Part shown: positions 6,300 to 64,000 of the stretch, one piece after another | How positions within the stretch are numbered: the first letter of the stretch is position 1 | Layout: every line of letters starts with the position of its first letter | From: Klebsormidium nitens | Lineage: Eukaryota; Plantae; Klebsormidiophyceae | DNA length: 64,000 bases | Reading direction: 5' to 3' | NCBI GenBank assembly: GCA_000708835.1 | Contig: DF237300.1 | Coordinates: 32,245-96,244, forward strand | Position numbers and translations under genes: made by a program | The notes under the pieces: generated by a model | What the model saw: only the letters and a program-made list of their open reading frames with translations | The model's database searches: none | Told to the model about the DNA's origin: nothing

Positions 6300-7874
6300 T
6301 GCGGGTCCAGGTTCGGATGGTTGGTTTCAACCGTTCGCTAGCAACTTGACCGATTTGCTCCATGGTCGGTGAGAAGCCACCAGAGAAAAGTGCGCCAAAG
6401 CAGAATTCGCAAGGCAACAAAAGGTTGCCAGTGGGGCGGCAAGATGAGGTGGAGGTGCAGTGCGTCGTCTTTGGAAGGCAAGCGCCTCAAGTCGAGCAGG
6501 ATCAAGCACGGAAGATCAATACTGCGTAGTTTGGTGGGGCATTCAAGCGACCAGTGCGGCGGTGACCTTTGTGAATGAGAGTACTGGTTTAAGTCCTTCA
6601 AGAGAAGGTAGCGCCAGGCTGGACATTGACAAACGAGTGCTTTACTTTCTGCTTGAGGGGAAGCTTTGGCTTTCAAACTGAGAGCGAGTAGTGGTACCTA
6701 ACTTCTTGTGCGAAGTGCGAATTGGTGAAGTAAAGAAAATCTGGAGAGGGGATTCGTTGAATGGATGCAAGAGAACCTTTTACAACTGAGGAATGCAAGT
6801 GATCCTTTGTACTGAAAATTTCTCGTGCCGTGACCTGATCGTGCAGTCATGATTGATCATGGAAGTCTGCTACTAACCTGCGAAATCGTGAACACAACCG
6901 GAATGGCTGCCACATGTGTGCTGTGAGGTCGGGAATCGATCCATCGTATTCTATATGCTGACTCTTGTGCGCGCACTCTGCAGATCGCATAACTTGAAAT
7001 CGTGACTGAGTGGACCAATCACATTTATGCACTAAAAAAGATTACCTACTAGATTATATATTTCTGAGATTCTAGCCCGTCTACGACAGATCTGTATCGC
7101 GATATCGATCAGTCAGTGCAGGGAAATATGAAAATATATGTGACCGGGCGCAGAAACTTGCATGCCGTTCCATGATGGGCCTGACTGCATGTCTATATTC
7201 ACGGCGCGAGCTGTACCGCATGCACATGACCCGCATTCGCGTCATGGCCGCACGCAGATTTTTTTTTGGTTTGATTATATACTTATATAAGCAAAAATTG
7301 GTTCAGATCAATCTCCGGCCATTGGAAGCAACTTACTGAGTGCATGTGGCGAGTTACGTCAAGTTTGAAGTGCATCGCGCGTCCGCTTCATTTGAAACGT
7401 CTGTTATGCTCTCGGTCAATCGGGCCTAGCTGCCTCAGACCATGAATTCAGATCGATCCAAAAAAGCCGATAAGAGGAGCTGGAGCTGAGAGTACGCAGG
7501 CCCGCAACGATCCACATGATCTTTGGCGGCATGGTGCACTACCGGTTGGAAACGTCGAATCTCACATGCTGAGCCATATCGTGGTTCTTGATTGGATCAT
7601 GTTGGATCAGGATGCTCAGTTTGCAACGAATCTGAGAGAGCTAGAGATTGTCCTTACCCTGCCCCAGTCTTAATGGAGAGCGTCTTTAACCAAGTAGCCT
7701 GATGTGTATTCGATATCTTGCATATTTGAGCTCGACTTTAACCGTCTCGTTTACGACCTATGTATCTTGATCTACCTACATGCATCTACATTGTCCAGCT
7801 CAACATGAGTCCGCCTGTTTGCTAACACTGGTCTATAGCTATAAAGTCACAACGTCGTTGAAGTTGCAGCAACT

Positions 7875-10686: not shown

Positions 10687-13600
10687 CTAACGGCCACTTG
10701 TGCCTGCTGACCCGCTGCTGGGCGCATTGAGACACGTGCCCCCGGTTCCCGGTTTGGTGAACGGGGGGCTTGCCCCGTGGCACCGTGCCTCGCACTCGTT
10801 GCCGTACAGGGCCCCGGTTGAAGAACAGACCGGGGAATAGACAGCGATACAGATGCACTGGCCTGCAAGCGACATGCTTAGTAGGTTCAGAAAAAAAGGT
10901 CGACGTCCTTCTGCACGGCCCGGGATTCTCAAGACTTGACTAAACCCGGAAAACGTCTTTTGAGGAGGAGTCGAGCGACAAAACGGGGACGCACGATGAA
11001 CTGTCCGCCAATAGAGCAAGCTGAAAGGTAGATCCAAGTCATAATGCATGTTTGCCGACGAAGTGCGGTGGTTCAGCTGATTGCGGCCTTGGACCTTCGA
11101 AAGCAGAGCTATCGTGGAGTTCCTAAAGCTGTCAAAGTCGGAATCAACATCCGTTTCACGGTCCGTCAACTCCTTGACCGATATCCCTCTTCGTCCTCCA
11201 TCATTCAGGACTGAAGAATTGATTGCGCCTTGTTGAACCTTGTTGAACAGGATTATCAGAAAACGTCGACGAGAGTCAAGAAGATAACCACCAAGAAACA
11301 GCTCCAGAAACGCTCGTCAAGTTTAAACCAATCGCGGTTCTGATCTTACCGCAAGCTCCTGGGAAGTAGGACTTCTTGGCGCATTTGGCGAGGCATGCGT
11401 TCTTGTACGTCTTGCCGTCGGACCCGCACACCGGGTTCTGGTCGTTGGAGCAGCCGCACGAGCTCGTCTGGGCGCCTGCAAACCATTCCGGATTCGTCAC
11501 TTTACGGGAAACAGAAAGTGAGTTGAAACGGGCTTTCCGTAGCTCTGGCTTGCGTTTGTTCAAGACTTGCCGTTTGAACCCGCACACAGGGTTCTGTCGT
11601 TGGAGCAGCCGCACGAACTCGTCTGGGCGCCTGCAAACCATTCCGGATTGGTCACGACCTTGGAAAGAGAATTATTTACATACGGGCTTTCCGTATCTTT
11701 GGCGGAGCTTGCGATTCTTCATGACTTGCCGTTGGAATCGGCACACCGAATTTTGGCTCGTTGGAGCAGCCGCACGAGCTGGCCTGAGCGCCTGCAAACG
11801 ACTCCATATTCGTCCCGAGAGTGAATCTACAATCTCGTCGTTCTGGGCTCTTTGTCTGTTTAAGAGTATTGCATCGCTGTTCGCTGTGAAACGGCCTTCT
11901 GTAGGACAGTCGCTCTCGACCTTCCTAAAAAGACGGCCACAGAGAGAGAGACACTCCTCCGCCTTTACTGGACGAGTGACCAGGTTTTCTTGAGGCAGAA
12001 GTGAACATATCGTGCCCCAGGAATTGAGACGGCTCTGAGTAGCTAGGCGCCGTTGAGTAAATTGTTTTCCGATGGCAGACCTCGATTCCGTTCACACGAT
12101 GAGCTACGGCGCAGGAGCGGAACCGGAACAGCGAGTATGAGAGACACCCTTCACGATTTTGGTGAAGGGCGACAAGGAAAGACGCTGCAGCGAGTCTTAT
12201 ACGGATCACCATCCACGTTTCCCACTCAGTTCATAGTCAGCCATTGTTATCTTCCGCTGGCCACCTAGTCGCCACTTATTCGTGGCAAGAGGCAGTCCAG
12301 AAAAGCAAAGCGTCTATTTGCATTAGAAAAGGGTCTTCTGACCTGCCTCCCCTTGAACCACAGCACTTCGAACGATGACGTGCTTTTGACTATCCTAGAG
12401 TTTGACAGAGGTGTCAGAACGGAAGCAAACGAAGTGATGTCTGGAAAAGGGGAGTGCACGTGACGTCAGGCTCACCGCATTCCCCCTTCTTGTAAGGACC
12501 GCTGATGCCGTGGCATTGCGCGTCGCACGTGTTGATGTACGTCTTGTTGTCGGATCCGCACACTGGCACCCAGTCGGTTGGGCAGTTGCACGAACCTGGA
12601 GACACGTGGCAGAAAGTGACGTCAGAAGGGAACCAAACAATGTCTGTAAATCGCGGTAAATTTAGGGATGGAGTTTTATCAATGGAGCATAATCTACTTA
12701 CAGCATCCACCACAGTCGCAGGAAGCCACGATACTCGCTGAAATGGCGGATTAAGAACCTCTTCTCCAGAAAACGCAATGACATACCCTGAGTCCCTTCA
12801 AAGAAATTCTCGGCACCGAAAAGCGTTGAATGAGACGCTCGCAAGGCCTCAGAAGAGATCTGTCCCGCTGGGGAATCGGTTGGAAATCGAACCACAAAGC
12901 ATACGAATCCTAATGAAAGCGACCAACTAGATGTCTGTCTAAGGAGAAGAGTCTGTTTGCCCATAGCCGAAACGTCGAAAAAGTATACTGCTTTGCCTTT
13001 TTTTGTTCCCTCGGAAAGAGGAAATTGGATAAATCCTACGTGGAGAAACCTGCGAAGCGGCTTGTATCGGAGGTAAGTACGCTCGGCGAAGCGGAGCGAC
13101 GCTGAAGGCAAGGCCCCAGCAATGAGCTTCTTCCCTGAAAGATGAACCGCAATCCTGCCGAGTCGCTTTCAAAGTTAAGCTTTTTGGCGCTTGCAAAATC
13201 GACGAAGCGGAGCGACGCTGACTGCTCGCTGCACGGCCCCGGGAATGAGCTCCTTCCCCTGTCCTAGAAGATGAACCGCAATTCTACTAGGTTGCTTTTT
13301 CCATTCAAGGCCTTTAGCCCCTACACATTCGGCGAAGAAGGAGAGACAACTAGTTGCTCACCGCAGGGCCCCGGGAAATAGCTCGCCCCCTTGCACTTGG
13401 CCATGCACGCGTTCTGGTACGTCACACCGTCCTGCCCGCACACCTGGTACGTCGAGTTATCGCACCCGCAGCCGGCGGGGGTGGCTGGCGCGGGGGCCGG
13501 AGCGGGCGCACGCGCGGGGCCTTGAGCTGCAGAATTCCGTACTTTTCTTTTTCACTCTTTGTCTTTTAGATTCGTTCCTGGTTGAAGGCACGGGTATTTC

Positions 13601-18216: not shown

Positions 18217-21200
18217 ATGATGAAGCTCGTGCGGCTGGCCGTTCGGACCAAGCCCGTCTTTCTTGTGCTAAGTTTGATAGCATTCGGGGGGCTGACAGTC
18301 TTCCAAGGTGGTTGTTGGCTCTTGATCAAGAACCTCATAGTGCAGTCAAGTCCACAAACAGCGGACGTCCCTTTCTCCGAAACTGACTTCTTGAACATGA
18401 AATACTTTCTCCAAGACAAGATAGGAGCAATAGACCTAGAGGACACAGTCAGAACAGATTCAGAGAGGAGGCGGATTGTGTGGGATAGATTCCACACAGA
18501 CCTGTGGAGACTGGAGACTGAGTTCTTGAGGGCGCGCCTGAAGTCACTCAATGCTGACTTGGTAAGCATTCCTGAAGATGCGGAGGGGAGACAGGGACCC
18601 CCTGTGTGCACCAGAAACGACAGCAGCTGGTTGAGGGGCCACACAACCGCAGGGGAGGGCCGGCGAAAAGAGAGGCGCAAGATCTATGACGTGTTTCTGT
18701 GAGTAACTGCAGCTTTTGCTCTTGACACCATATTCATCCTTTTAAACGAACACTGATAACGAAGACATACACTGTATCAATGGTGAGCGATATTAGGGTG
18801 GTGTATACATGTGAGATGTGATAAGAGCTGATTGATGGCATGATCAATCGGTGCCACATTCTCAGCAGGTGGAGAGTTAATGCACAGCTGAGTTGGCAAA
18901 GTCAGGCGCAATATTGACAAACTTCTTTGCTCTCGTGGCTTAGCTCTGGGAGGCCCAGGTTGTTTGTCATTATTCAGTTGTTTGCGTGCTGTATGCGCCT
19001 TTGGTGGCATCAGAAAGCTGGATTGGAATCCTGATACGACAGATCTGGCCCCTGCTTGTCAGAAAGCAAATTTGTTTTGAACCCTACTTAGTGGAGCAAG
19101 ATTGCACCGATTACTTCTTAGGTCAAAGACTGGGGTGCTGAGGGCTTGACGCGATTCTAGGAAAATATAAACAGTAAGTCCTATGCTTGGAAAGTCATTG
19201 AATGGTGGTGCCCGATGGAATCATTTTTCTCAGCACCACTGATCAGGGCATTATTTCAGTTTGGTGGTGTGCAAACATATAGCCTCTAGTTGTGGATGGA
19301 TTTTGAACGATGCGAGAGAAGCCAACGGCGAAACAAGGCTTGGGTTGAACCGTGATTGGAAGTAGGTTCTGACGGGAAGCGAAGCTTTAGTGTGTCTGCT
19401 GACATTATTCCAACCACCACCGCGCCGTGACGCTAACCAAAGTTATGGGAAGCTCGTGTAAGAGTGTGCTTCAAAAAGCAAACGTACGAACGACCTTGTC
19501 AGATGCAAAGTGATTAAACGAAGAGGTCATCTTGAAGAGGTTGCACCAGTTTATGTCTGAGAGGAGGAACCATAGGACGCTGAGTGCCGTGATGGAACTA
19601 AAACATCAAAGACTTTGGATCTTGATGCTATTCGGTCTGCTTAATATGCACAACCCAAGGGCCTAGACATCGGGCTCTTGTTGTCTCCTTTGAAAGTTCT
19701 GTCAGTTGGACAACCATGCAAAGCCCTTCTGAACAAGGAACCACCCGGGCGAGAAGTACAACGCTATCCAGGTTTGGAAGTTGCAGTGGCTTGAAAGGGT
19801 TTGGAGGTTGCAGTGGCTGCAAACACATCTGTTCACTTCCCGAATGAGCTGTTGATGATTGACATCAACCAGACTGAGGTGGGACAATTGTAGCACCTCT
19901 CCGTGCTAATGTTCTGCACTGCGGAAATCTGGTGATTTGAGTTTTGATGACTTTCTTTCAAGCTCCAAATACATTACACTGAGCCAACCACCAGAGGTTT
20001 CGGTGACAGCCCTACTATCAACCTTGCCCAATTCAAGTTCCGGACACTTTTCTGGACTAAGATTTTCGACATGAGCTGTTCTGTATAAGCCTCTCCGAAC
20101 CTCCATTCGGTTCATTTGGCTCAACGAACTAGCATAAGTTGTGCACAATGCTCACACCAACGACTGCTCTGTCGGAACCTCTTGATATCCTCAAGATATG
20201 GCATCCATTTTTGAAACCGGGGTTCTTTCCAGGTCCTTTGACGAGTTCAAGCTGGCATCAGCCTGGACAAGCTTGCATAAACCAACCTTCTTATGCTCCT
20301 CGCTTTCGGTTCATTGGAACATCTGCCTACAATCTCTGACTTTTCCGAATCTGCAGATTTTTGGACGAGCGCCCCCTGATTGACATCCGGCTAAACCTGC
20401 TAGCAGACGTGGTCGACACATTTGTCATCATGCAGTGTCCCATCACATTTATGAACCACAGCAAGCCGATGCCAGACCCGACCACGTTCGAGGAGCTCGC
20501 GCACGTCAAGCACAAGATCAAGCGGCTGTACTGCGACCTCGAAAACTATCCGTTCCAGGTAAGGGATGCGTTGTGGTTTTCATTTTACCGGACAGTAAAA
20601 GTCGTGACGCTGCAAACAAGGAAAAGGGTGTATCTGCACAAGCGCTCGAGTTCTGTGAATGGTGACTGACCGCCCTCTATCCCTTACCTGCCACTCATCT
20701 CTGCCGTTTCGCCCATAAAACTCAAGAAAGATAAGAGTAAGCCAAGATAATAGTAAGCTCCGACTAACACTAAAAACCCTAACCCAAAAAGACACCCGCT
20801 CCGCGCCCGTACCCACCCTAACCACCAAACAACCCTACCCTTCCCAGTGCGGTTACTTTATTATTATCTCGGCTTACTATTCTTTTTCTTGAGTTTGATG
20901 TTTCGCCCCCTCCCAGCCGCTAGAGACGATCTCTCCTTTGCCACTTACTTCTTCCTTTCCCCCCCCTCCCGTCTCCCCAGGAACCCAGCCCCTGGAAACG
21001 AGAAGAGCACATGCGGTACACTGCCATCAAGCTCGTAACCGAGTTCGTTAACCCGGAAGATATCGTCATGTTGGGCGACTTGGATGAACTGGTCGACGGA
21101 GGCGCCGTTGACCACTTGACCCACGAGCCCGACTCCGCCTTTCCGGTCACCCTCTACGTTCCGCTCTACCGCTCGAGCTTCGGGTGCATCGACCGGAACT

Positions 21201-48927: not shown

Positions 48928-51900
48928 TTAGGCAGCAGGGGCAGATGATTGAGCAGTTATGTCTGCAAAGAAGGTCCGCAGAAGCTCCTTTTTGTTGACC
49001 TGCGCAGAGGAAGCCCGAGCTCCATTACGAAGGGCCGTAGGGCACGCGTCTCGACGCAGAGAGCGGCAAAAGGCCTAAAGTAGCAAGCATTAAGTCGCCA
49101 ACAAAGACGTCAGCCGATGACGAGTTTCGCTTGTTCTGGCGACTCGCAAGCAGCGCAATCGGTTTTGTGGTCGCCTCCGCTTTGCCGCCATGCCGCTCCG
49201 TGAGCGGCTCTTACTGAGAGCACCAGCCTGAAACGTTCTGCAATGACGACGTTCTGAGACGCATTTGGCGACTGGGCAGGGCGAAACGAGGTCACCAGGA
49301 TTGCCGTGTTGAAGACAATCTGTTCCTGGGAAAAACTGCAGCCACAACTATACCTATCCCCAGACCGACAGGTGAACAAGTAGAGGATACTAAGGCGTTG
49401 GGGCAAGGGTATCTCTTTGGCTAGAGGGTAGTCAAATGCAAGGTGATATAAAACCTTGGGTTATGTGCTTTCCCTTTGTACTGGAAAAACACTCCCACGC
49501 ACAAATTTTCGCTTTAAGCAAAAGGCGATGTCCACTAGGAGAAAACTACGTAGACCTCACTTCCCGTTTGGCTCCTCAATCAGAATGGAAAGGCAAACGG
49601 AACGAGTCCTTTAGGTGCAACTTGCCCTTCTTTTACCAAGAGAAGAGACTGCAGCAGGCTGATTTCAACAAAACAAACAGTTCTCTGCGCTGGCTCTTCA
49701 ACAGAAAGCTGTACGAGCAAGTGTACGACCTACCTTCCCCATCGCGTTTCTTGGCATGGTTTCTACCATCTCGATGCGTCTCGGAATCTGCGTGATAAAT
49801 ACGAGCCGTCAGATGAACGGGTATCGACATTGACATGTCTGACAACACCCCCTCGATTCAGGGACCGTCAGCCGCTTCTTAATCCACAGGACCCTTGCTG
49901 TGCGCTATATGGTCGTACCGGCCCCACTCTCTCCCGGACGATAAGGACGCATTGTCAAGTGATTAGGGTGAATGAGCCGTAGGACTAAGAAAAGACCAGC
50001 TTGGGACAGGTAAGGTTTGATTGGTGTTTCGAGTGGGTTATAAAGGTCGGGAGCAGGGAGTGAGTTTTTGGTGTCGTGTTCTTCCCGAAGCTTATCACGC
50101 CTTTACTCTCGGACGTCAAGGATGTGACCCACTAAAGAACGCCGCCCCAACCAGTAGAGAACTGCCGATCGTTACACTCACCTTGTAGTGCGCCAGACGA
50201 ACTTCACCACTCCCTTATCCTTCGAAGATTATTGAACTCAAGAAAAGTATTAATAAGCCGAGATGATAAGAAGGTAACCGCACTGGGACGGGTAGGGGTA
50301 ATTTGGTGGTTAGGATGGGTATGGGTGCGGAGTAGGGGTCTTTTTGGGTTAGGATTTTTAGTGTTAGTCGGAGAATACTACTATCTTGGCTTTTCTTTAT
50401 CTTTTGACACCTTATTATAGAGTCAAGTACGCCCCGGTAATGACACCGTTTATTCGTCCCCGGATTGGTCGAAACCTTTATCGCTGACCACCGCATACCA
50501 CTGGTAGTCACCCCTGTCTAGATTGGTCCTGTAAGCCGGTTTCCACCTTTCGATTGTAATATCTACGGCGAGCATTCTAGCCGAGCAAACCCCCTGCAAA
50601 CTCGTCTCTTTCAGCGTTCAAACCCTCTTTAAAAACGGTAGAGTTGAAATCACTTGGCATCCAGTGCCAAAGAAAGAGACCTGCTTCGGCCCTTCCAACC
50701 TCCGCAGACATTGACACACACACGACACAGAAATAGGAGACCTAATTGTACCCCAGCTTAAACCACAGTACAAACCTAGCACGTAACCCTAGTAAGGTGG
50801 CCATTCTCTTTCTTGAGGTTTATTCGAAGACTGCGGACGCCCACTGTTGAAACGTACACCACGTCCAGCTTTCGGGCATCGGCTTTACGACACGCTGCCA
50901 CGTGTCAAACCCACCTTGTAGTGCGCCAGATGATCCTTGGCCCACTCCCGGACGTCTTTGGACGTCACGGACGCTCCCTCTGGACCGCTCCGGACGACAA
51001 TCACCGCTGCGACCGTCTCGCCGTACGTTGCGTCCGGAAGGCCGAGCACCGCACACTCCGCAACGGCCGAGTGCTGCACTTTGGAGGTGGAAGGGATTCG
51101 TAAAATGTCCTTGTTTGACCTCTCAATCTTCTCACCTTCTATCCTCGCTGCGACGCTGAGGATCAAGCAGCACTCGCATTGATCAGCAGAAATAGAGGAC
51201 GACTTTCGTATGTACCCACTTTCAGAACGGCAGCGCATGGAGAACGAGCGGTGTGGCGTTCAAAAAAGAGTTCTTAACCGAGGAAGCAACGGGGGGACAG
51301 ATCGATGGTCCAGCAAACGGTCACCTTTGCTAAGTTATTGCGGGTGAAGGCCTGATAAAAAGATCTGGGCATGATCGCTAAAATCACGTAATCCAGAAAG
51401 CCCCGACTTTCCAGTACTGAGCTGTTCGGAGAGACCGAAAGTCCTTTCAGAAATGAAAAGGAATAAGTTCCAAACTACAGAGAGGTTCCCTCTCGGCGTC
51501 GAACTCCGCCCGCCCCCACCTTGAGTAACTCCGTTTCGATTTCGAGCGCCGACAGCTTATACCCCCCGCTCTTGATGATATCCACACTCAAGCGGCCCAG
51601 AATTCGGAACGCCCCATCTTCTTTCCGGACCTTATCCCCCGTTCGAAAGAAGCCGTCCGCATCGAACGCTTCTAAAGTGGCATCCGGACGGTTCCAGTAC
51701 TGTGTGAACAGGCCCCCGCTGCGGACGAGGAGCTCGCCTTCGGATGCGTCCGAAGCGTCGGCGTCTGGAACAACTTTCACCTGTATCAGAAAAGGGATGT
51801 GTTTGTAAGCTTTAACAACGAACGATTGGAAGTACGATAGGCGGACGAACCACCGAAAGAGAAGGGTTGCGCCCCCATGGAACCCTGGCAACGCTCAATT

Positions 51901-54900
51901 TGAGGGGTATTAAAATTTCTAAAAGTTCACTTTGTTCAATTATGTAGCTCTGAGTTGCTTATCCCCTGCGAATGATCTCATACTCCGTGCCATATTCTAG
52001 TGAGGTCGAACACAGAAACGCGTGGCCCGAATGAGTTGCTGTCATTTTACGAATGGTAAAGAAAGGTATCATTCAGCGAATGCCTTCAGAAGGACTTAGC
52101 AAAGTCACAGCGCTGAATGAGACGTACAACTACGCAGGTTTTCTGTTACAACGCTCGAGAACTTTGGAACGACTTCGAAAAGGTCGAACCAGTGGTTTCC
52201 TTCTAGAACTCAGAGCGCAGAACCACAAAGCGCAGACTGCCACACGCTTATCTCAACCCCAGGTCGAGATACGTTCACAAGTTTCGGTCGCCGTTTTCCA
52301 TTCAGTGGGTTTGAGAGCGCCATCCCACACTCGATCCCCTCTACCCCGAGAACCTTTAAACCAAGAACGTGAAGACCCTAAAACCCTAAAATCCGCGCAT
52401 GTCAGCACATGCTGACGTCAACCCCAGGTAAAGGTACGCCCACAAAGCGCCAAACCCAAAAAAGTCTGATAACTCAAAGTCACAACTGATAACATCAAAC
52501 CCTGAAAGGTGCGCATCGCTTACGTCAACCGCGGGTTAAGGTACGCCCACAAAAATCCCGGTCGCCGTTCTCCGTGCAGTGGGTTTGAAAACTTCAACCC
52601 AAATCAATCCCCTAAACCCCTAAAGCCCTCAAACCAAAAACCTCGAAAACCCTAGAACCTTGAAAGCCGCGCAATGTCAGCACATGCTTACGTCAACCCC
52701 AGGTAAAGGTACGCCAACGAGCCCCGGCTGCCGTTCTCCGTGCAATGAATTCGAGAGCGCCATCCCAAACTCGGTCATTCCGTAGCGCTCTAGTAACCGG
52801 TGCCCTGAAACCCGCTCCCATTCTTCCATCAAGGAAGTCGGACAGGCCGCGGATCCGGACACCTGTCAGAACCAGACGTCCGAATTTGTGCTTTTGAGTA
52901 GTCACGTCACCCATGCTTTGCGCGAATCCTTCATTTTCTTGAGGCTTAGCTTTTGATGACTCCGTTAAAGCAGTAGTGACCAACTCCAGAAGCGCCTTTC
53001 GTGCAACGCGTGGAAATTCAGCTTAGACGGTAGCATTACAAAGTTGAGATTTTGTGCCCTTGTGAAAGATTTGAGCAGGTAGGTGCCGCAACATCAGCAC
53101 ACGGAGTGATTAAACCAGGGGAGTTTGATCTACTTTGATTTGGCAAGCTTTCGTCTAGTCGTACAGAAGACGCGCAACCCCTCTTGTAGAGCAATCCGCA
53201 TCACCAGACTATGGAGCCTAACCATAGCGCCTCGATACACTGAGAAACAAGACTAAAAGTGTTCGAGCTCTTGAGAATTGCAATCGGTTCTTCTCACCAT
53301 GAGCCGCAACCTATTGACGGACGCGATTGCGGACGCCTGCTCGTCTAGCGACATCGTTCGAAATAAAATCTCAGATACTTTTAAACAAAGTCTTTACTTT
53401 TCTATGGAGATTGCAGTCGGTCCTCTTCTCACCATGAGCCGCAACCTTTTGACGGACGCGGTTGCGGACGCCTGCTCGTCCGGCGGCATCGTCCGAAACG
53501 CCTCCAGCAGACGAACGTACATAGTGGGCACCTGGTCAACACAAGAGCGGAGGCGTCATAAGCGATGGGCGCAACGTATAAGCCATTGGCGCGCCGCATA
53601 AACGATGGTCGCAGGGGACGTGCGTCAACCATAAGGGGTGTGTAACCCAAGCTGTGTTGCACTCCTGTCGTACGAGCCACGTCTCCAGGTTTAGAGACAC
53701 AAGAAGATGCATTAGGCCTCTGACGTTAGAGTTACGGTCCCTGTGAATTGTTTCAAGAGCAGAGCCTGGGTGAAAGACAGAAGGCGGTGCACTCTTGTCT
53801 GGGGTACGCACCTTCGCATCCAATTCGAAGAAATTAAGACACTCAGTGAGACACCCACAAGCTCGGCGGAGACCGCTGTTAGAGTGTTATGCTTGCATGT
53901 TAGATCTCCTCAAGCAGACCAGCAACGAAGAGCTTAAACCTATTAACCAGTGAACGGGCTCGAATAGGAAGAGAACAGGAAGAACAGTCGGGAAGGTGTT
54001 GCATTGCTGAGATTTGGATAACTTGACCGTAAATTAGAGTTGTATCAAACAGTGAGAAGGTGAGGAAAGGAAAAAGGAAAGAGAAGCTTGCAGATAAGGA
54101 TGAAAGGATGTACCCACCCCCATGAAGAGCGTGAGCGGATGGTCACCGGACGCCTCTCGTCGGAAACGCTCCCACACCTCGTTTGCCTTGAACTTGGGGA
54201 GGAAGTGAATCTGTCATCAAGGAAGAAGCAGATTTCCTTCGATGAGCTTGAAGAAAGGGTTGTCGTCAAAGATCCGATTGCCTCTTGGCAATCTGAAAAC
54301 AACAACGAAGACAACGACTTTCGGGGCTCTCCCTTCAAGCGAAAGAGTGCGCTTCTGTGGGTTGACGACAGTGCAGCTACCTGCATAAACCTGAGCAAAG
54401 CAAGGATCAAAGCTGTGGTATCTACAAGTTCAGTGAAAGCATCGTTGAGCATGGATAATTTTGTGGAACCAAACACTTCCTTTGGTTTATAGTGGGCAGG
54501 AGACAAAGGCAGGGGAATCGAACGAACATAACCTCAGAGGTGTGTTTTGGAAACGGCTGCATTCAGCTTCTACATCCTAAAAACCTGCCCTGATTTCAAC
54601 GTAGGGCTGTCTCGCGTCAGCATGATTCCCGCGGAAACGACCATCGTCGCAAATGGAGGCGCAGAAAGCACACGGTCTCGACAAGTCGTGGTAAGAATCG
54701 CACAACTAAAGCCGAGAGTCAGCAAGCTCCAAGATCTGACGGCTTCGATATTTTCCTTCCACAGTGTTTAGAAGGTCCACGATATTCGAAACCAAGCTTT
54801 ACATGAAGTCGAGGTCTTCAGGGAATCTCCGTCCGCTTTTCAGATACCAGGCATTGACGTTCATTCCACTTTCAGGTTTACGAAAACCATTTTCCCGATC

Positions 54901-57112
54901 ATCAGGACTTGGAGTAGTTACAGTCCCGTCATACCGCAGATTGGAGGTCGCACGGCTCACCGAAGCGCCGCTGTAGAGCGGGCAGAGGAGCGCATTCACA
55001 AGGCCGTGGACGTGGTGGAGAGGCAGGGTGTGAAGAATCGCGTCGCTGGAGGCCCATTCCCAGGCGTCGACGAGCATGCGGGTCTGAAGAAAGGAATTTG
55101 ACGACTGGGTTATACAAGAATTTACCGTTCAAGGTTGATTGAAGAAATGGGGCAAAGAACGGATGACGAGAGTGCCGATGAGCAGTGGTTAGATGACGGT
55201 GGATTGTCAACGCAAGTCGTAAATGACCAACTTATAAGGTATATTGGGTCCTTGTTCGTGAAGCCATCTTAACTAATTTTTCATTCGACTTTGGTTCGAA
55301 GTGGCGAGAACACATCAAGCGGCGCTTGCTAGAAGGTCGCCCCATCGTCTGAGGCGGAAGGCTATCAGGTTGGGGGCCTGAAATGAGCGAAGCCCAGAGA
55401 ACGAAGAAGAGGATTTAACGTCGACGAGAGAAAGCGGCATCAAGGCTTCAAAGGAGCGCCGCACTGACACCAGACACTCAACCTGGTTCTGGCTCAGGGA
55501 ATGTTTCGAACGGGCCGGTCGCAGTCGTGTCATAAAAGAGGGCAGATGAAGAAACACGGAGATCTTCAAGGAAATTAGACTATACGACAGTTGGAGAAAA
55601 AAAGGTGACGAAAGAATCGAAAGAAAAACCTCGGAACAGCCGGTTTCCACATGACGTCACTCTCAACCCTACTCTTTGTCTGTTGCTTTCTCCGTTTTCT
55701 CCCTACCCCAAAAATCCCATCCACCCGTTATCCTACCTGCGCCTCCAAGCTCCCATGCGTATGCACCACTCCCTTTGGCTTCCCCGTCGTCCCACTCGTG
55801 TATATAATCATCGCCGGCTCGTCCTTAACCCCCTCCGTAACCCGCTCGTTAACCCTCCCCTCCAGGAACTTGACGAGGGGCCCTTGGGGGTTAGCCGCCA
55901 ACAACGAAACCCCATCCGGCGTTTTGAACACGTCTAGAAAGGCTGCCTTCCGGTCGAGCGCGGTTTTCAAGGGGTTTGGGGCGTGGACTGAGGGAATGGG
56001 GAGCAAGGGGATCGACGCTTTTTGGACGAGGTTTTGGAGGGTGGGGTGAAATTCGTCAGAGGCGAGGACGGCGGATATCCCCTGTGAAGGAAAGAGTTTC
56101 GGTTTGTTGTCAGATTTGTCCCACTGACTTCGATATGATGATACTGAGAGTAACAGGGGATCTTCACGTTGGAATCAGATGTTGTCATGTGTTGCTGAGG
56201 GCCTTAACGAAGGCAGAGGAAACAAGTGTAAGTGAATCTTCGATTTGACTGCAGATGCTTGTTTTCGAACCCCCGAAAAGCAAAGTGATTGGAGGGAGTC
56301 TCAGGAGGCTGGACGAATTATAGCGTCAAACGGCACCAGGAAGCATAGGCAAGAAAGCAACATCTCTCTATGAATTTTCAAACATTTTAACATTATAGGT
56401 ACGAAATTAGCTACAAAGGGGCGCCAGCTGCCTTTTCTACGACGAAGAGCTGTGTGCAAAGCTTTAGAGATCGAGGGATCCCTTGTTTGATGCAGGGTTC
56501 ACCGAATGACCAACGTTGAGGGGATTGCAGCCATCAGTAATCAGGAATGTTTTCTTTGAAACACAACATAATGCGGGTGTGGAAACGCATCAACGCTGCT
56601 CTTCACATCAGGGTTCCCTTGTCCCCTTTAGGGTACACATCTTCACAGAATGAGAGTATATGTGAAACCATCCACCAACTAGTCTTATTTTCCTAGATTG
56701 CCAGAACTACACTCACCGCATCGCGCATCACGTACTCTAGCTCAGCTGGAGGGTGCGAGAGCGCCATTGGAACTGCCACCCCCCCCGTCAGCCACGTCCC
56801 CCAGAGGGCGCCCACGAACGCCGCCGAGGGGGGGGCCATAATCCCCACCCGCTTCCTCTCCAGCCCAGCCCCCTGGAAAGGAACATTCCGCAGCAATGTG
56901 CGGAAGGCGTCTACGTAAGCCTGGCCTTCGAGTGGGGAGAAGTTTTCTGGGGGGGGAGGAATGTCAGCGGCATTGGAGCTAACCAGGAGATTGGTAGCTA
57001 GGAAGCTGGAGAAGTTGAGGAGATCTCGGTATGTCGTTGGGGGGGAGGAAGGGGAGGGGCGGGCGACAGCTGTCCGCCCCCCGTGCAGTAGTGCCCGGCG
57101 AATGACCTCCAT
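48928..57112 (-). CDS. AAE13: Malonate--CoA ligase / acyl-activating enzyme 13 (ACSF3-like)
   Basis: Exons 57112-56717, 56081-55737, 55083-54961, 54210-54118, 53531-53433, 52862-52692, 51780-51520, 51073-50915, 49787-49734, 48999-48928, all phase 0. Motifs [78 protein letters not shown]. An upstream targeting exon may exist. Confidence 0.93.
50231..50415. mobile_element. Second, older copy of the 185-bp MITE, inverted, in an AAE13 intron
   Basis: Its reverse complement aligns with 20715-20899 along the whole length (e.g. ccgactaacactaaaaa(t/c)cctaacccaaaaagac and cccagtgcggttac..ttat.atctcggctta..cttgagtt). One TIR and the target duplication are degraded. Confidence 0.8.
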
Positions 57113-57632
57113 AGCTTGTGCCCCTTGGGTGGTGCTTAGGGTGGGGGAATTGTGCGAAGCTAGCTCGATTGGTTTTGATTGCAGACAGTCAAATCCCAAG
57201 AGAGTTTTATTGCATCAGGCGCAAATCAGCAAAGGGCTTTCAAGAGCTTTCTAGTGGGCTGATTTGGGGCTTGTTCCCCAATTGCCTGCAAATGCTGTGG
57301 CCTGACTGCGCTGAACTTGGTTGTCCTGTTTGTAGAGTGTCTACTAAACTACTGCTGAAGGTGAAAAGATGCAGCTATGCCACCCGCTTGTGGGTCAGTG
57401 CAGATCAACATTCTGGCAGCTGTTAGTAAGCTGGGAGCGTCTTTTATTATCCACTGCTGTTCCTGGGCTTCGAGGAGCACCAACAAAAGTTGCAAAGGAT
57501 CTCTACAGCAGCATCGGATCACTTCTCTCGAGAGGAGAAGCTCTGATGCAATGCCATGCAGAGACACTGAGTGTGTCCGAAGTTTGAGATTCAGAATGCA
57601 AGCTGGGCGGTCGTTGAAGTCTAAGAGCTCTC

Positions 57633-57734
57633 CAAACTGAAAACTAAGGAACTGTATCGACTAAGCTTCCGTAGAAGCATTCTGCCTGTGGCACAGCTGC
57701 TTGATGGTCGATCATAAAATTTTGGGTCGAACCC
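57633..57734. repeat. Terminal repeat B2 of the YR retrotransposon
   Basis: 102 bp identical to 58216-58317 (caaactgaaaactaaggaac...aaattttgggtcgaaccc). Confidence 0.92.
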
Positions 57735-58215
57735 TCCGCGCGGGCTTGTGTCCAGTGCATGGGCTAGGAGGAATTAAAGGCTCCAAGCCGACGCAGTGTG
57801 TCGCGAATTTGTGTAGATTCGCGGCGGTGACGTACGCCCGATCGGAGGATCAGAGACTGCGCGCGCATTCGCGAGCAGACAGGGTTTGACCATCGAGCCG
57901 CGGCGCAACAGCGCGTGGCATTCATGGGGCGAGGACGCGAATGTCTCAGAAGGCGTCTTAGGGTGTCGTGCAACGAGCACACGGTGAGTATGAAGAAGAG
58001 CTAGATGGATATTTCAAGGGTGGGTGGGTGGGATCGCGCAAATTCCATGGCTTCTGCGCCTCAAAAAGCTCCTACGACACTTCTTCCTTCCAACTTGAAA
58101 TGCTGATAAACGCATTCTCTCTTCGTTCTCTTGAGCTCAAAGTCAAGACTCTGTTCCGTCGAGCTGTACCTTCGATGATCACGTGTCCAATTTCAATGGC
58201 TGCAAAAGTATTCCT
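57735..58215. other. Putative A2 segment of split direct repeats (A1-ORFs-B1-A2-B2)
   Basis: 481 bp between the two B copies, as in PAT/Ngaro-type split direct repeats. The matching A1 is predicted beyond position 64000 and cannot be seen. Confidence 0.6.
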
Positions 58216-58317
58216 CAAACTGAAAACTAAGGAACTGTATCGACTAAGCTTCCGTAGAAGCATTCTGCCTGTGGCACAGCTGCTTGATGGTCGATCATAA
58301 AATTTTGGGTCGAACCC
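58216..58317. repeat. Internal repeat B1 of the YR retrotransposon
   Basis: Identical to 57633-57734. Confidence 0.92.
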
Positions 58318-58338
58318 AATCAAGAATTGCCCAAAAGG

Positions 58339-59487
58339 ATGGCGGGCAAAAATCTGTTTCCTTTTGTCCGTGCAGGGTTCAGAACGAATTTAGCCGAACG
58401 TTATGGAAACGTGCTCGTGGTGTCACTTGCTGACACGTCAGTATCCGACTCTGGTGTGAGGGAAAGCACGGGTCAGGACTTCTACGCTCACGCCTTGCAC
58501 GGTGCAGCTGCTGTTGCAAACCGAAGTGTTTGCAGCTCATTCGAAGAAAGTCGAAAAAAGACTTGGAGCGAGTTCCTTGAGTTTTGCGGTTTCATCGGGA
58601 AGGCGGTTTCTGACATCATAGATTTGGACGTCTTGGCTTTCGTTCACGGTTTCTGGCTGCCGCGTCATCGGGATGCTTGTCGTACAGTGCTGAGCGTAGA
58701 TGGGAGCAAAACAGCGTCAGCGTCTGCGATCAAGGGCATCATCTGTCATCTGAACAAAAGTTTTCTCATGCTCGGTATCGAAGGGCATCGGAACCCGACG
58801 CAGTCAGAGGCGGTGCGGAACTACAGGGAAGGTTACCGGAATTTGTTGCACGAGTCAGGCGTTCGAGAAAAAAGAGCACTTGTTTTCAAGGAGGCAAAGG
58901 TTCAGGACTTCGTCGAGTGGTTAGAATCCAGGGTAGCCGCTGCCTCGGGTGTCCAGCTGTGCAGTCTTTTGAGCGATTTGGCAATCGTCCACTATCTTTG
59001 GGAATCGTGGAGTCGGGGCAAGGAATGCGGATCTTTAGAATTTCGGCAGATCTCTTTCGAGGATCAATTAGTTCGGGCCGGCTGGAGCAAGACGGTTCGA
59101 GAGGAACCCAGTGCCGAGATCCCCGTGCAGTCCAAGTTCTTGCGGGCTGCTGCTCGCCTCGTCAGCGCCTGCGAACAAGCAGGGGATCCGATCGGTTCCG
59201 GGTTCCTGTTCCGTCCACTAAATGAGCGGAAGAACGGATTCAAGCCGAAAGCCATGAGCAGCGGAACCATGAGGCGAAGAATGCAGCAGCGTCTGAAAGA
59301 AGCTGGCTTATTCGAAGGCGAGACTTTACACAGCTTCCGCCGTTCTGCAGTCCAACACGCTGCTTCCATAGAAGGTTACGACGTGGCAAAGTTGATGCAA
59401 CGAGGAAGGTGGTCTAGCTACGCAGCTTTCCGATTATATGTGGAGGAGATAGAATCAGAGTTCCCTCGACGACTTGGACCAAGGTAG
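58339..59487 (+). CDS. Tyrosine recombinase of the retrotransposon, antisense to gag-pol
   Basis: Uninterrupted ORF (open from about 58288, first ATG 58339). Catalytic set R (WSRGKECG), HSFRR, W (GRWSS) and Y (FRLYVE); preceded by a helical binding-domain-like region. Confidence 0.9.
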   Translation: MAGKNLFPFVRAGFRTNLAERYGNVLVVSLADTSVSDSGVRESTGQDFYAHALHGAAAVANRSVCSSFEESRKKTWSEFLEFCGFIGKAVSDIIDLDVLAFVHGFWLPRHRDACRTVLSVDGSKTASASAIKGIICHLNKSFLMLGIEGHRNPTQSEAVRNYREGYRNLLHESGVREKRALVFKEAKVQDFVEWLESRVAAASGVQLCSLLSDLAIVHYLWESWSRGKECGSLEFRQISFEDQLVRAGWSKTVREEPSAEIPVQSKFLRAAARLVSACEQAGDPIGSGFLFRPLNERKNGFKPKAMSSGTMRRRMQQRLKEAGLFEGETLHSFRRSAVQHAASIEGYDVAKLMQRGRWSSYAAFRLYVEEIESEFPRRLGPR

Positions 59488-59749
59488 TACAGGTTGTAGT
59501 AGTTCAAAATAACATTCGTAAATGATTAGACAATGGTAGTCTAACACATGCTGCGTCTCACATGCTAATTCTCAATGCACCTTATAGACATTTCATTGTA
59601 TACCAAGCGATACTTCATTCCCAATTCTCTATGATATTTCATATCCGCTGCATGCCAAGATTTCCAACACATCCTTTAACATTTTGCCTTTCCAACTTAC
59701 GACTGCAATGAAAAGAATTATTCATTTTCATCATATCGAGATCTGTCTC

Positions 59750-61627
59750 CTATCTGTTCTGGTTCTTCTTATCCCATTCTATGCAATATACTTCCAATCC
59801 TAAGAACGCAGGACTGATCGTTCTGCTTGGTACTCTTAGACTAGCTCTGCAGCTATCAGCTGCTCTCGGGATCTTGTAGCTGGCTCTTACGTTAGCGCCT
59901 TGAAACCCTCGGATTTGGGTTTCCGCTAGAGACCCTTTCGGCGCAGAAATGCAGACGAGAGCGTTGACTCGGAAGTTGCTCAGGCGCTCCAGGACCTGCG
60001 TCGTCAGGCCGACCGGCGAAAAGATCCAGGCGCTCTCTCCCGCCTGAACTAGTTCCCTCCAATCGAGCGCCATCGCGTGCACCGCCGTGCACCCCGGGGT
60101 ATAGTACTTCGCGACGAAGCGTTCCGCCACGTGGAAAGTTGCTGAGGCAAATAGATCTATCGACGGGTTAACCCCAAAGTGCTCCGTCAGCTTCCGGAAC
60201 ACGCTGGCCGAGACTCCCCAGTCGGACGCATCCGGTTCTCTCGACAACGCATCCGCTTCCGCCAGGTCCTCTCGCGGAACCCACCTCGTTACCAGATCGC
60301 AACGGAATTCCGCGCACAGTTCGAGGACCTGCTTCAGAGCGGAACGGATCAGCGGAACCGAACTGCGAAACTTCCCGATGGCTGCGAGCCCCGCTTGACT
60401 GTCCCCGGTCAGCATCACCGCCCGCTCCGTTATCAGTTCCGGTACCTTCTCCGTCACAACTTTTATCGCCGCCGCGTATCCGATTACTTCTCTCTCTGTG
60501 CTGGACCCTCCTGCCTGTACTTCCGAGAATGTTCCTTCTATTTCAAGTCTCCGCCCATCCGGAAGTTCCGCCCAGCCGCCAAAGCGGATCTCTGATGCGT
60601 CCACGTGCGCGCTCACCGCCACTGGCCTAGGCCACCATCTTCTTACGTTCCACCTCTCCAGGTTCTTCAACCAGAAGGTCGCCGTTTCCGCTACCTCCGC
60701 CGGTGTCGGGAAAAGTTCGTCCCAGGTCTCCTTTCCGCTGAGCGCCCCGTAAAAAGACCTACTGTAGAGCGCCACCGGGAGGATCGCAGGCGCCGTCGAC
60801 GCTAGCAAGCCGGCCATCTTCGCGAGCTTCCTGGGTGACGTCGTAGGGCTTTCCGCCATTTCCGCTAGTGCACTCCTCAGCCTCTCCATCCTGCCTTCTC
60901 CCAGTCTGAACTCCGCTTGCTCCGAATCGACCAGGAATCCGAGCCACTTCAGAAGGAGCACTGGCTCGAGTTGACACTTCGGCAGTCCGAAGTGCGCGCC
61001 CAGCGCAACACCCATAAGCCTCACAATGAACAGAATTTGACGTAGCGCTCTCCCAAAAGTCGGAGCTGCCGTGAAAGAGTCATCTATGTAGCCAGACAGC
61101 GGAACACCCCTAGCCCGGAGTTCAAGGATTGGCCCTCTCATGACCTTGGTGAAGACGTAACAGGCTTGAGCAAATCCAAAGCACAGGACCTTGTAGAAGA
61201 AGACAGTCTTTCCGACTTTAAACGCGAAATACTTCCAGTATGCCGGATGAATTGGCACATGGAAGTAACCTGACCTCAAGTCTGCAGTTGCCATGAAGAA
61301 ACCTCTTAGCGTGAACGCCAGGATGTCTCTCAGCTTCTCGTATTCGAACGGAATCTGCTCGAGGAAGGCATTGACGTATCTATCATTACAAATCAGGCGC
61401 TCTTTCCCCGCAGACTCTACCACGCCCATCGGGCTTATCACTTCCGGAGGCTCTGCGTCCGGGGGCCAAATTCCGACCGCTCCGGACTTGAGGTTTTTCC
61501 TAATCTCTGCTTCAGAGAACTCCCATCGCGTATAGAAGGAGCGATGGTTGCCGAATTCAACTCTGTGCGGTCGCTTACCCGACAGGTATTCGCCTACGTT
61601 TCGTTCTCCTATCGTCTTTGCTAGCAT
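59750..61627 (-). CDS. Pol: reverse transcriptase, RNase H and DIRS-type DNA adenine-methyltransferase-like domain
   Basis: 625-aa ORF, frame open to 61792. RT motifs RLICNDRYVN, ADLRSGYFH, LCFGFAQACYVFTKVM, YIDD (61090-61079). RNase H motifs VDAS, STEREV, GDSQ, EADALSR. C-terminal DW..VF..L..HFG.PSIDLFAS. Confidence 0.92.
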   Translation of the reverse strand: MLAKTIGERNVGEYLSGKRPHRVEFGNHRSFYTRWEFSEAEIRKNLKSGAVGIWPPDAEPPEVISPMGVVESAGKERLICNDRYVNAFLEQIPFEYEKLRDILAFTLRGFFMATADLRSGYFHVPIHPAYWKYFAFKVGKTVFFYKVLCFGFAQACYVFTKVMRGPILELRARGVPLSGYIDDSFTAAPTFGRALRQILFIVRLMGVALGAHFGLPKCQLEPVLLLKWLGFLVDSEQAEFRLGEGRMERLRSALAEMAESPTTSPRKLAKMAGLLASTAPAILPVALYSRSFYGALSGKETWDELFPTPAEVAETATFWLKNLERWNVRRWWPRPVAVSAHVDASEIRFGGWAELPDGRRLEIEGTFSEVQAGGSSTEREVIGYAAAIKVVTEKVPELITERAVMLTGDSQAGLAAIGKFRSSVPLIRSALKQVLELCAEFRCDLVTRWVPREDLAEADALSREPDASDWGVSASVFRKLTEHFGVNPSIDLFASATFHVAERFVAKYYTPGCTAVHAMALDWRELVQAGESAWIFSPVGLTTQVLERLSNFRVNALVCISAPKGSLAETQIRGFQGANVRASYKIPRAADSCRASLRVPSRTISPAFLGLEVYCIEWDKKNQNR

Positions 61628-62370
61628 CGCCTTGACGATTCTAATCTTGTCCTGCTTCGCGTTTTGGGTCCCTTCAAACCTCGGTCTAAACCCGTTTTTA
61701 AACCAGCTTAAGACCGACCTAGCAGACTTACGGTTCGAGCGTCTGAGTAGAACTTTCCTTCCAAGCAGGAAGGTGAGACTTGAAACTGGCAGCTACAAAG
61801 TTTTCATGGTCCGGGATTAGCGTCCGCAAATCCCGGAGTTGATTCAGAGATTCTGACACCAATTGCGTGTCAGGTGCTTTGGGTTCAGACTCCATCTCTT
61901 ATAACAGCTCGCTGACTCTAGCCACTTGTGCTTCCGGCGTCGGCGCCCTATCCTCTCTCGCTAGAATCTGCTTCATTTCATCCTCCCACTCTTGCGACGG
62001 TCCTTCCGCAGAACCGGAACTGAACGGATCGGATTCCGGATTTATTTGATCCGCTTCTGGATCTCCTAACGCCTCATCCGCTGCGTCTGGAACTGCCGTT
62101 AAGCACGTTGCCTCCAGCTCTTCTAACTCAAGCTGACTTAAAAGGGGCTCACTCTCGTTCATTTCTCTCGACTCGAGTTCTCCTTCTTCTTGCATAACGT
62201 CAGTCGAGCTGGCTCCTGGTTCCTCCACCTTGCCTTCAGTCGCGCCTTGTTTTGTCCACTCTCGTGGATCAGGGCTTCCGGAAGGGCACGCAGGTTCCGC
62301 TGGGGAAAGCTGGAACTCCTGCCGGGGCTTCTTTGGAACCGGCTCAGCGATTTCACTGTCAGCCCATTCA
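61628..62370 (-). pseudogene. Disrupted N-terminal part of pol (acidic linker plus pre-RT region)
   Basis: The acidic ORF stops at TAA 61901-61899. The same frame resumes EMESEP..PDHENFVAASFKSHLPAWKE (a DIRS-like pre-RT motif) and needs removal of one A at about 61755 to join the RT frame (WKEVLLRRSN..SWFKNGF). Confidence 0.7.
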
Positions 62371-62821
62371 CTGTTACAGATCAGTGAACATATTTCAGCC
62401 AAGAATCCGCAATCAAATTCTAGGAACTCAGAAAAAGGTTCAGAGGAATCGCACACAGGCCAAAACGCCAGAAACAACAAGCAAACTCCACGTTCCGCTC
62501 ATTCAGAGTTTAACCGAGAAATTTTTGCAAAGGCACTTTAACCGTTTAACTTAGCACACTGGCCGTGCTTATTTACACTTGTTACGAGTACAGACTTCCC
62601 TCTATCTTTATTCTGCATAGAATTGCCTACCTCGACAAGTTTAACCCACAGGATCAGAACCTAGTTCTGTCTTGCGCTCAAGAACCATCTCAGCGTGTTC
62701 ACACTTTTGCATCTTAGATCTTCTCCTATCTTGAGCACACCTTTCTAACCAGATTTGTGCAGTGCTTAAAATTTCGCGCTTCTGACTTCTCAGCCTTTCC
62801 TTTATCTACAAGGTTCTATCC

Positions 62822-63972
62822 TTACTCTCTGTTACGCCGGAACTGAGCATCCTGCCCGCCTAGAGGCGGCCTTGGTCCTTGATTCTGGTGTTGTCCGCCC
62901 CCTGCTCCCCTGCCATACGGTGGACGCCCCGCTCCCTGCTGCCCAGGACCGATGTTCTGGTAGTAGTTGGTCGCCGGATTGTAGAATTGCCCCCTGCATT
63001 ATGCATAACGAGTTTAGACCGGTTCCTCCTTTCAAGATTATCTCCGATCATAATTCCATTCTCGCTTTCTAAGTTGACTTCGAGTGTCCTCGACAGCAAC
63101 CGAAAGGTTCAGGTTGCTCACTGTCCAAGGCGGACGACAAAAGAATGCTTGGATCGATCGATCAGAACGAACTTCTTATAATCCCTTCCCTTTGCTCGTC
63201 CAAGTTGGACGAAACAAGTACCCGATTGGTCGATCGGGATCAATTCAGAGCTCTTCCTCTCGGCATACTTTGTTGTCCTCACCTTCCCCTACCAGACTTG
63301 ACTAGGTCTTCAGTTTTACGGTTGACCAAGATCGATCACAAAGCTTTACAACCGAGGTTAATTTTAGTCAGGAAATCACCTGTTCTTTTCTCTCAGCCAT
63401 TCCGGATGCTTCGCCAGGACTTCTTCTGCTTTGACCTTCTTCTCTTGGAAGCAGCGCAGGACTTCTCTTTCCACGGCCGCCACTTGAGTTGCCGTTGGGT
63501 TTTCGCCCAGCTCTCTAACTTTCTGCTGAGCGAAGGTGTTGAGATCCTCCGCTAGGTAGTTGAGCCTGATGCAGCGATTCTTTAGGAAGACACTCATGTC
63601 ACCGGCTAGTGCTAGCGTTCCTTTGTGCGCCGTTGGAGCAGCGTATATAGCTGAGTACATCTCATGCTGCGCAAAGAGTCCTCGCTTTCTGAACAGATCG
63701 ATCGCAGTCGCGTGACGTCGTAACTCTGACTCCATTGCAGCCTTGTCTGTGTTAGATCTCACAAGTTGCTCTTCTAGCGAGGCGATTCGAGACTGCACGT
63801 CTGAAGGAGTCGCCTGCCTAACCATTGGAAGAGGCTGCGCTGCCACTTTGACACTTCCCAGAAAGGGGTTTTGTGCAAACTGCTGCTCTTGCTGGCTAGG
63901 GAAGTTTTGGCGGCTGGGTCTCACGAAAGCCGGTGGTGTGACGGTTGGACGGGTTTCAACGCTGCCCGTCTG
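62822..63972 (-). CDS. Gag-like protein of the retrotransposon, spliced; 5' end outside the window
   Basis: Exon 63972-63380 (Q/P-rich start, coiled coil IASLEEQLVRSN, helical region), GT-AG intron 63379-62994, exon from 62993 (Gly/Gln/Pro/Arg-rich, RG-like), ending in TAA 62824-62822 if unspliced. Gag identity is inferred from position only. Confidence 0.65.
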
Positions 63973-64000
63973 CTAGACATGTGCGGAATCCATGCCCAGC

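Follow-up and report, generated by a model that had tools for sequence, protein, structure and literature searches.

A retrotransposon at the end of Klebsormidium nitens scaffold DF237300.1 belongs to a family in which gag and pol are likely separated by two conserved phase 2 spliceosomal introns that flank an RG-rich mini-exon, with the spliced fraction of the RNA predicted to set the ratio of Gag to Gag-Pol. We analyzed a stretch of 64,000 nucleotides (nt) of this scaffold, referred to here as the window, whose position 64000 is the scaffold end. The element lies on the minus strand and is a 5'-truncated, dead copy of a PAT-like (Kangaroo-like) tyrosine recombinase (YR) retrotransposon of the DIRS order. 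Retrotransposons normally lose introns, and the balance between Gag and Pol is usually achieved by frameshifting, readthrough, or overlap of open reading frames (ORFs). To our knowledge, solutions based on splicing are known in only a few long terminal repeat (LTR) elements (Ogre, copia, BARE, and EVADE).

The two introns had been proposed in a first-pass annotation of the window, and all of its coordinates proved correct when we read the minus strand directly. The gag-pol region of the window copy is composed of the following features.

63381 to 64000, minus strand: C-terminal part of gag, with a frame open from 63924 (ORF 63924-63376) and a conserved ..KHPEWLR.. end.
62994 to 63379, minus strand: intron 1, 386 nt, GTGATT..AATGCAG, phase 2.
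62826 to 62993, minus strand: exon 2 (the mini-exon), 168 nt, open, encoding an RG/Q/P-rich basic peptide, RGQFYNPATNYY..FRRNR.
62371 to 62825, minus strand: intron 2, 455 nt, GTAAGG..TGTAACAG (..TAACAG), phase 2.
62607 to 62612, minus strand: AATAAA hexamer in intron 2, not conserved.
61902 to 62370, minus strand: exon 3 (ORF 62370-61902), the acidic, disordered N-terminal part of pol, which starts D-EWADSEIAEP and has a nuclear localization signal (NLS)-like PKKPRQ near its start.
61899 to 61901, minus strand: premature TAA, specific to this copy; relatives show sense codons (ACC, GAG).
61752 to 61755 (near 61753), minus strand: approximate position of an insertion of 2 nt that displaces the reverse transcriptase (RT) frame, specific to this copy.
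59750 to 61795, minus strand: pol frame, with RT, the RNase H motifs VDAS / STERE / GDSQ / ADALSR, and a putative C-terminal domain of DIRS type.

At the first junction (exon-intron borders are marked by ^), gag ends ..AAC AG^GTGATT; its last exonic base is 63380, and intron 1 begins at 63379. The intron 1/exon 2 border reads ..TGCAG^G at 62994/62993, the exon 2/intron 2 border GA^GTAAGG at 62826/62825, and the intron 2/exon 3 border ..TAACAG^T at 62371/62370; phase 2 was borne out at both junctions. When intron 1 is retained the text reads AGG TGA, and the gag stop TGA (63378-63376) sits within donor 1. Retention of intron 2 gives GAG TAA, the immediate stop that the first-pass annotation had described. 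Such a stop is automatic for a phase 2 intron with a GTRAG donor and is thus not independent evidence of design. Exon 3 starts as had been claimed, but its supposed continuation into the pol frame fails in the window copy, at TAA 61901-61899 and at the 2-nt insertion around 61753. Both are mutations of this copy in particular, because relatives have one uninterrupted frame there. We also considered a third phase 2 intron, running from GT at 61905 to AG at 61719, that would bypass the stop and the frame shift, and rejected it given that the homologous frame of relatives is continuous.

We then compared the window with seven copies that have a complete gag-to-pol region (n = 8; 16 introns), comprising further K. 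nitens subfamilies (L004 on DF237548.1 and L013 on DF237679.1) and contigs from other samples (L001, L002, L010, L011, and L012). The pol proteins of the seven are from 79% down to 48% identical to the RT ORF of the window, for which P0009, at 96% identity, is the window copy's own annotated pol model. The first-pass annotation had asked whether other copies keep both introns; in 8/8 copies they do, in position, phase, and GT-AG ends, with GT..AG ends and phase 2 found in 16 of 16 introns. The gag stop falls within donor 1 in all eight copies, donor 1 is invariant in the alignment as AACAG^GT, and donor 2 has the form A^GT(A/G)AG throughout. Mini-exon lengths of 168, 147, 165, 129, 129, 96, 120, and 132 nt are all multiples of 3, even with seven different lengths represented, and the lengths of the introns cover every residue modulo 3 (345 to 440 nt for intron 1; 403 to 728 nt for intron 2). 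Every frame of the introns holds at least two stops, and the GC content of the mini-exon is above that of both flanking introns in 7/7 copies measured.

Identity between copies in the introns was 0.45 to 0.56, which is the random level (shuffled controls, ~0.47), compared to 0.64 to 0.83 in the gag exon. The anticipated faster divergence of introns relative to exons therefore holds for the gag exon; it does not extend to exon 2 or to the beginning of exon 3, where nucleotide identity is itself near random. For this reason, we based the argument on frame, phase, and length instead. Taken on these grounds, the two gag-pol introns are very probably real.

Three of the relatives (L010, L011, and L012) have all ORFs intact and keep the introns. 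Their ORFs consist of an upstream ORF of 273 to 333 amino acids (aa), Gag of 351 to 424 aa, pol of 783 to 858 aa, and an antisense YR of 357 to 402 aa. The K. nitens copy L004 is broken by a frameshift in exon 3 (about 12080-12139) and another in YR. Since the window copy and L004 are both broken, and differently, the "genes" annotated on them are pseudogene models.

The peptide encoded by the mini-exon is G/R-rich and basic in all copies, with a ..W..GAGRGR.. core and an end that reads FRRNR or SPRRxDSPxKKR, and it is plausibly a nucleic-acid-binding or localization tail. The more distant copies carry motifs of SP/RS type (SPRRxDSP, RSPSP, RSRSPS) ahead of the basic end; such motifs recall NLS regions or SR-like regions that can be phosphorylated. 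The mini-exons with these motifs are as follows.

L002, 2431 to 2559: mini-exon with SP/RS-type motifs.
L010, 2595 to 2723: mini-exon with SP/RS-type motifs.
L011, 2715 to 2810: mini-exon with SP/RS-type motifs.
L012, 2533 to 2652: mini-exon with SP/RS-type motifs.

The upstream ORF of the intact relatives is conserved among them, has no Pfam match, and lies directly before the Gag ORF or overlaps it. In L001 and L003 the overlap between the two is of the ATGA type, and in the proteins P0007 and P0008 a Gag N-terminal part and a coiled-coil part occur in one ORF of 401 to 452 aa. In the window copy, the corresponding region would lie beyond the window end.

L010, 63 to 2158: upstream ORF region.
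L011, 231 to 2373: upstream ORF region.
L012, 64 to 2178: upstream ORF region.

How is Pol reached in these elements? To judge from the sequences, Pol appears to be entered from upstream rather than self-initiated, because its frame opens just 4 to 10 codons upstream of the acceptor (L001, L002, and L004), because it has no conserved ATG, the first Met lying 7 to ~100 codons into exon 3, and because an NLS-like basic motif, P/A-K-(K/R)-x-(R/K/T), found near the start of exon 3 in five copies, precedes the first Met in three of those. L011 and L012 each offer a single phase-matched acceptor. Public K. nitens gene models P0004 (KFL_003510150), P0006, and P0020 join exactly the predicted exons, and P0020 spans Gag through the whole of pol.

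Several points weigh against splicing of this kind. The pattern is weak in the window copy alone: when the spacer of this single copy was shuffled with dinucleotides preserved, 24% of shuffles allowed a mini-exon of 96 nt or more in matching phase and with a GTRAG donor, and in 5.8% such a mini-exon could reach 168 nt or more. The significance of the intron pattern thus comes from its conservation in the seven other copies, not from the window copy alone. Sequence conservation is poor in the mini-exon and at the beginning of exon 3, and in one decayed copy (L006/L007) the frame of the mini-exon is defective. Donor 1 can also be joined to acceptor 2 in frame, both introns being phase 2, so inclusion of the mini-exon is not forced. 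The public gene models may also have been predicted ab initio instead of from transcripts. Finally, no contig was placed on gag-pol when positions 58200 to 64000 were compared with Logan contigs of four runs (X5, X4, X7, and X1) whose RNA nature is guessed; this absence is no proof of silence and is neutral with respect to the sense splices.

An alternative explanation dispenses with splicing altogether. The ~1-kb spacer would be untranslated, Pol would be produced by its own initiation, by reinitiation, or from an internal ribosome entry site, and gene predictors would have taken fortuitous GT/AG pairs for "introns." The lack of gag-pol contigs and the frequency of comparable mini-exons in shuffled spacers are both compatible with it, as is the finding that, in protein searches with P0004, the matches that span a junction were K. 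nitens models only, all others ending at the gag end. Word-indexed and exhaustive protein searches with the same query detected no intronless copy, at a sensitivity limited by the fast evolution of exons 2 and 3, and when a Gag alignment was used to scan JGI metagenome contigs, 367 pattern matches resulted, of which 0 were confirmed. We nevertheless regard an untranslated spacer as improbable, given that splice dinucleotides, phases, and a mini-exon of a multiple of 3 are kept in 8/8 copies while intron sequence has been randomized, and given that pol has no conserved start codon and is preceded, ahead of its first Met, by the basic motif in three copies.

From the anatomy and conservation that we observed, we infer splicing that would yield three protein isoforms and act on their ratio. 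Unspliced full-length RNA would be the replication template and, when translated, would give Gag alone, with the gag stop inside donor 1. Removal of intron 1 alone would produce Gag with an RG-rich tail that ends in the donor of intron 2. Removal of both introns would connect Gag to Pol through the RG linker in a single frame, which is the only evident route to Pol. It would follow logically that the fraction of RNA that is spliced sets the amount of Gag-Pol relative to Gag. The suggestion in the first-pass annotation that unspliced RNA is the form that is replicated gains support from the genomic copies, which keep their introns; because the introns persist through deep divergence, the template RNA must be unspliced. 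Work on tagged DIRS-1 showed that sense introns normally disappear upon retrotransposition, being usually removed before reverse transcription, and that they can persist if near the 5' end (PMC7192593). Intron retention here, set beside intron loss in DIRS-1, implies that some specific mechanism protects the genomic RNA from splicing.

The same DIRS-1 behavior can be turned toward a different explanation, in which the introns are real and are removed without tuning the ratio. Splicing would then be essentially constitutive for the mRNA pool, or the mini-exon an optional cassette; the excess of Gag would be set elsewhere, for instance by separate RNA pools, export, or protein turnover, and the introns may serve expression, export, or evasion of silencing. 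Skipping of the mini-exon stays in frame, as noted above, and separate RNA pools are used by BARE (PMC3735527). We consider this account unlikely, since both introns have been kept over deep divergence, which means that an unspliced exported pool coding for Gag only must exist, and since both stops lie exactly in the donors.

The first-pass annotation had placed the switch at intron 2, with retention of that intron coupled to polyadenylation at AATAAA 62612-62607. The hexamer is indeed present inside the intron, and splicing is reported to be combined with premature termination in Arabidopsis Copia elements (PMC5580714). However, AATAAA occurs in intron 2 of 3/8 copies at unrelated positions (214, 166, and 74), one hexamer per 455 nt is unremarkable, and TGTAA in intron 2 has no conserved position. 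Retention of intron 1, moreover, already terminates Gag. Intronic polyadenylation therefore found no support and seems very improbable to us, and the idea of intron 2 as the switch was likewise unsupported; intron 1 is at least as likely to be the deciding step, because its retention is already enough to end Gag. A ratio set by the spliced fraction of the RNA is, in our view, the likely arrangement.

The identification of the element as a YR retrotransposon was corroborated by Pfam matches to RVT_1 and Phage_integrase and by split direct repeats. It has a YR and split direct repeats, with no integrase and no LTRs. The following features lie beyond pol.

58327 to 59487, plus strand: tyrosine recombinase ORF, 386 aa (Pfam Phage_integrase, E = 4.8e-7), antisense to and convergent with pol.
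58216 to 58317, minus strand: internal repeat B1, 102 nt, 100% identical to B2.
57633 to 57734, minus strand: terminal repeat B2, a direct repeat of B1 with which the element ends on its 3' side.
57984 to 58375, plus strand: recombinase leader intron, 392 nt, GTGAGT..TGCAG, which contains the junction of the B1-A2 repeats together with the conserved ATG at 58340.

An RT domain was present in pol (Pfam RVT_1, E = 9e-10), for which 88 homologues were found. Pfam gave RVT_1 alone and no Dam-like methyltransferase domain; a C-terminal region resembling DLFAS.. / ..FPP was recognized by eye only. Homologues of gag among P0001 to P0008 are 59 to 88% identical, with P0004, from K. nitens, at 100%, and a CCHC motif or zinc finger was absent from the Gag sequences inspected. 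The 5' part of the element, including repeat A1, is missing because the scaffold terminates at window position 64000, and 403 nt separate the gene KFL_003510150 (P0004) from the DF237300.1 scaffold end. A full set of split direct repeats is seen in relative L001, in which A1 (1-162) resembles A2 (7149-7310) and B1 (7038-7079) resembles B2 (7592-7633). The B1-A2 repeats of the window copy (58317-57735) are located downstream of the YR gene. YR is inverted relative to pol in every copy seen, including L001, L004, L010, L011, and L012.

The plus-strand leader intron is supported by a contig of run X5 (266 nt) that matched 58375-58602 on the plus strand, while its further 38 letters matched 57953-57982. 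This pattern indicates that 57983 is joined to 58376, with the 392-nt intron removed. The contig was the only one placed in 58200-64000. Donor and acceptor of the leader intron are conserved in L001 and L004. The ATG of the upstream exon (57924) is out of frame with YR in the window copy, and the same is true in L001; both copies are decayed. Combining this intron with the two on the sense strand, we lean, with some reserve, toward the broader view that this YR lineage of streptophyte algae needs the host spliceosome for all of its enzymes. The two sense introns would be the sole route from Gag to Pol and would give three isoforms (Gag, Gag with an RG tail, and Gag-RG-Pol), and the antisense intron across the repeat junction would control the recombinase mRNA.

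We compared this arrangement with those of known elements. Like Kangaroo of Volvox carteri and other PAT-type DIRS elements, the Klebsormidium element combines an RT/RNase H pol with a tyrosine recombinase, has split direct repeats of the form A1..B1-A2..B2, and has a Gag without a zinc finger. An inverted recombinase is common to the Klebsormidium element, Kangaroo, and a Daphnia pulex PAT form (PMC4157794). Unlike in Kangaroo, in which the internal repeats lie between the methyltransferase and YR, the Klebsormidium repeats lie beyond YR, as they do in the "novel" PAT form of Daphnia (PMC4157794). Introns between gag and pol are unmentioned in the literature and reviews on YR elements covered by a full-text search on YR elements and introns, a coverage that excludes the original Kangaroo paper.

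The closest likeness in principle is to Ogre, a Ty3/gypsy LTR element of legumes. According to two sources (PMC3735527, PMC12786077, citing Steinbauerova 2008), the ORFs of Ogre are separated by an intron that the genomic copies keep. Once this intron is removed, the upstream ORF is linked to the pol part that follows, and the extent of splicing thereby determines the amount of full polyprotein. GT-AG introns between ORFs whose removal restores one frame, as in Ogre, were present in 8/8 of our copies. Ogre differs in being an LTR element with an integrase and a single intron whose splicing has been shown experimentally, whereas the Klebsormidium element has a YR, two phase 2 introns, and a coding mini-exon, and its splicing is predicted. 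In the Ty1/copia elements copia, BARE1, and EVADE, alternative splicing of their own transcripts also controls Gag versus Pol, and unspliced RNA is the genome (PMC3735527, PMC12786077). The direction is opposite, however: there, splicing removes pol and leaves a subgenomic RNA for Gag only, with unspliced RNA giving Gag-Pol, whereas in Klebsormidium unspliced RNA would give Gag and spliced RNA Gag-Pol. Penelope-like elements likewise retain spliceosomal introns after retrotransposition, a property described as "highly unusual among retroelements," and the plus-strand leader intron of Klebsormidium is similar to their intron in the 5' untranslated region (UTR), which crosses a repeat boundary (PMC8557442). 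They differ in belonging to another RT clade with another integration mechanism, and their introns are mostly in UTRs rather than between gag and pol. The principle is thus known from Ogre LTR elements, and a two-intron gag-pol in a YR element is a rare arrangement for which we found no report among YR elements.

Other features of the window lie outside the element. A host gene with introns that resembles AMP-binding acyl-CoA synthetases is located at about 54000-57200 on the minus strand, ~400 nt beyond the 3' repeat of the element; a gene on L005 has AMP-binding Pfam matches. Two arms of an inverted repeat, at 20727-20895 and 50235-50404, are ~170 nt long, 85 to 87% complementary, and 29 kb apart. 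Clusters of diverged direct repeats occur at 52234-52776, 11441-11832, and 5064-5650, with units of 45 to 108 nt at spacings of 107 to 321 nt.

These elements have practical consequences for annotation. In the K. nitens gene set they appear as ordinary host genes with several exons, and they will be broken up by transposon-annotation pipelines in which ORFs are taken to be intronless. If the arrangement is confirmed, control of Gag-Pol expression by splicing would have arisen independently and convergently in a YR element, and intact copies such as L010, L011, and L012 would provide a natural test system. It would also raise the question of how an algal retroelement exports and packages unspliced RNA. 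Should the lineage as a whole prove to depend on the spliceosome, its genomic RNA must avoid the spliceosome and undergo export with its introns in place, a problem like that of retroviruses and one that is undescribed for the DIRS order.

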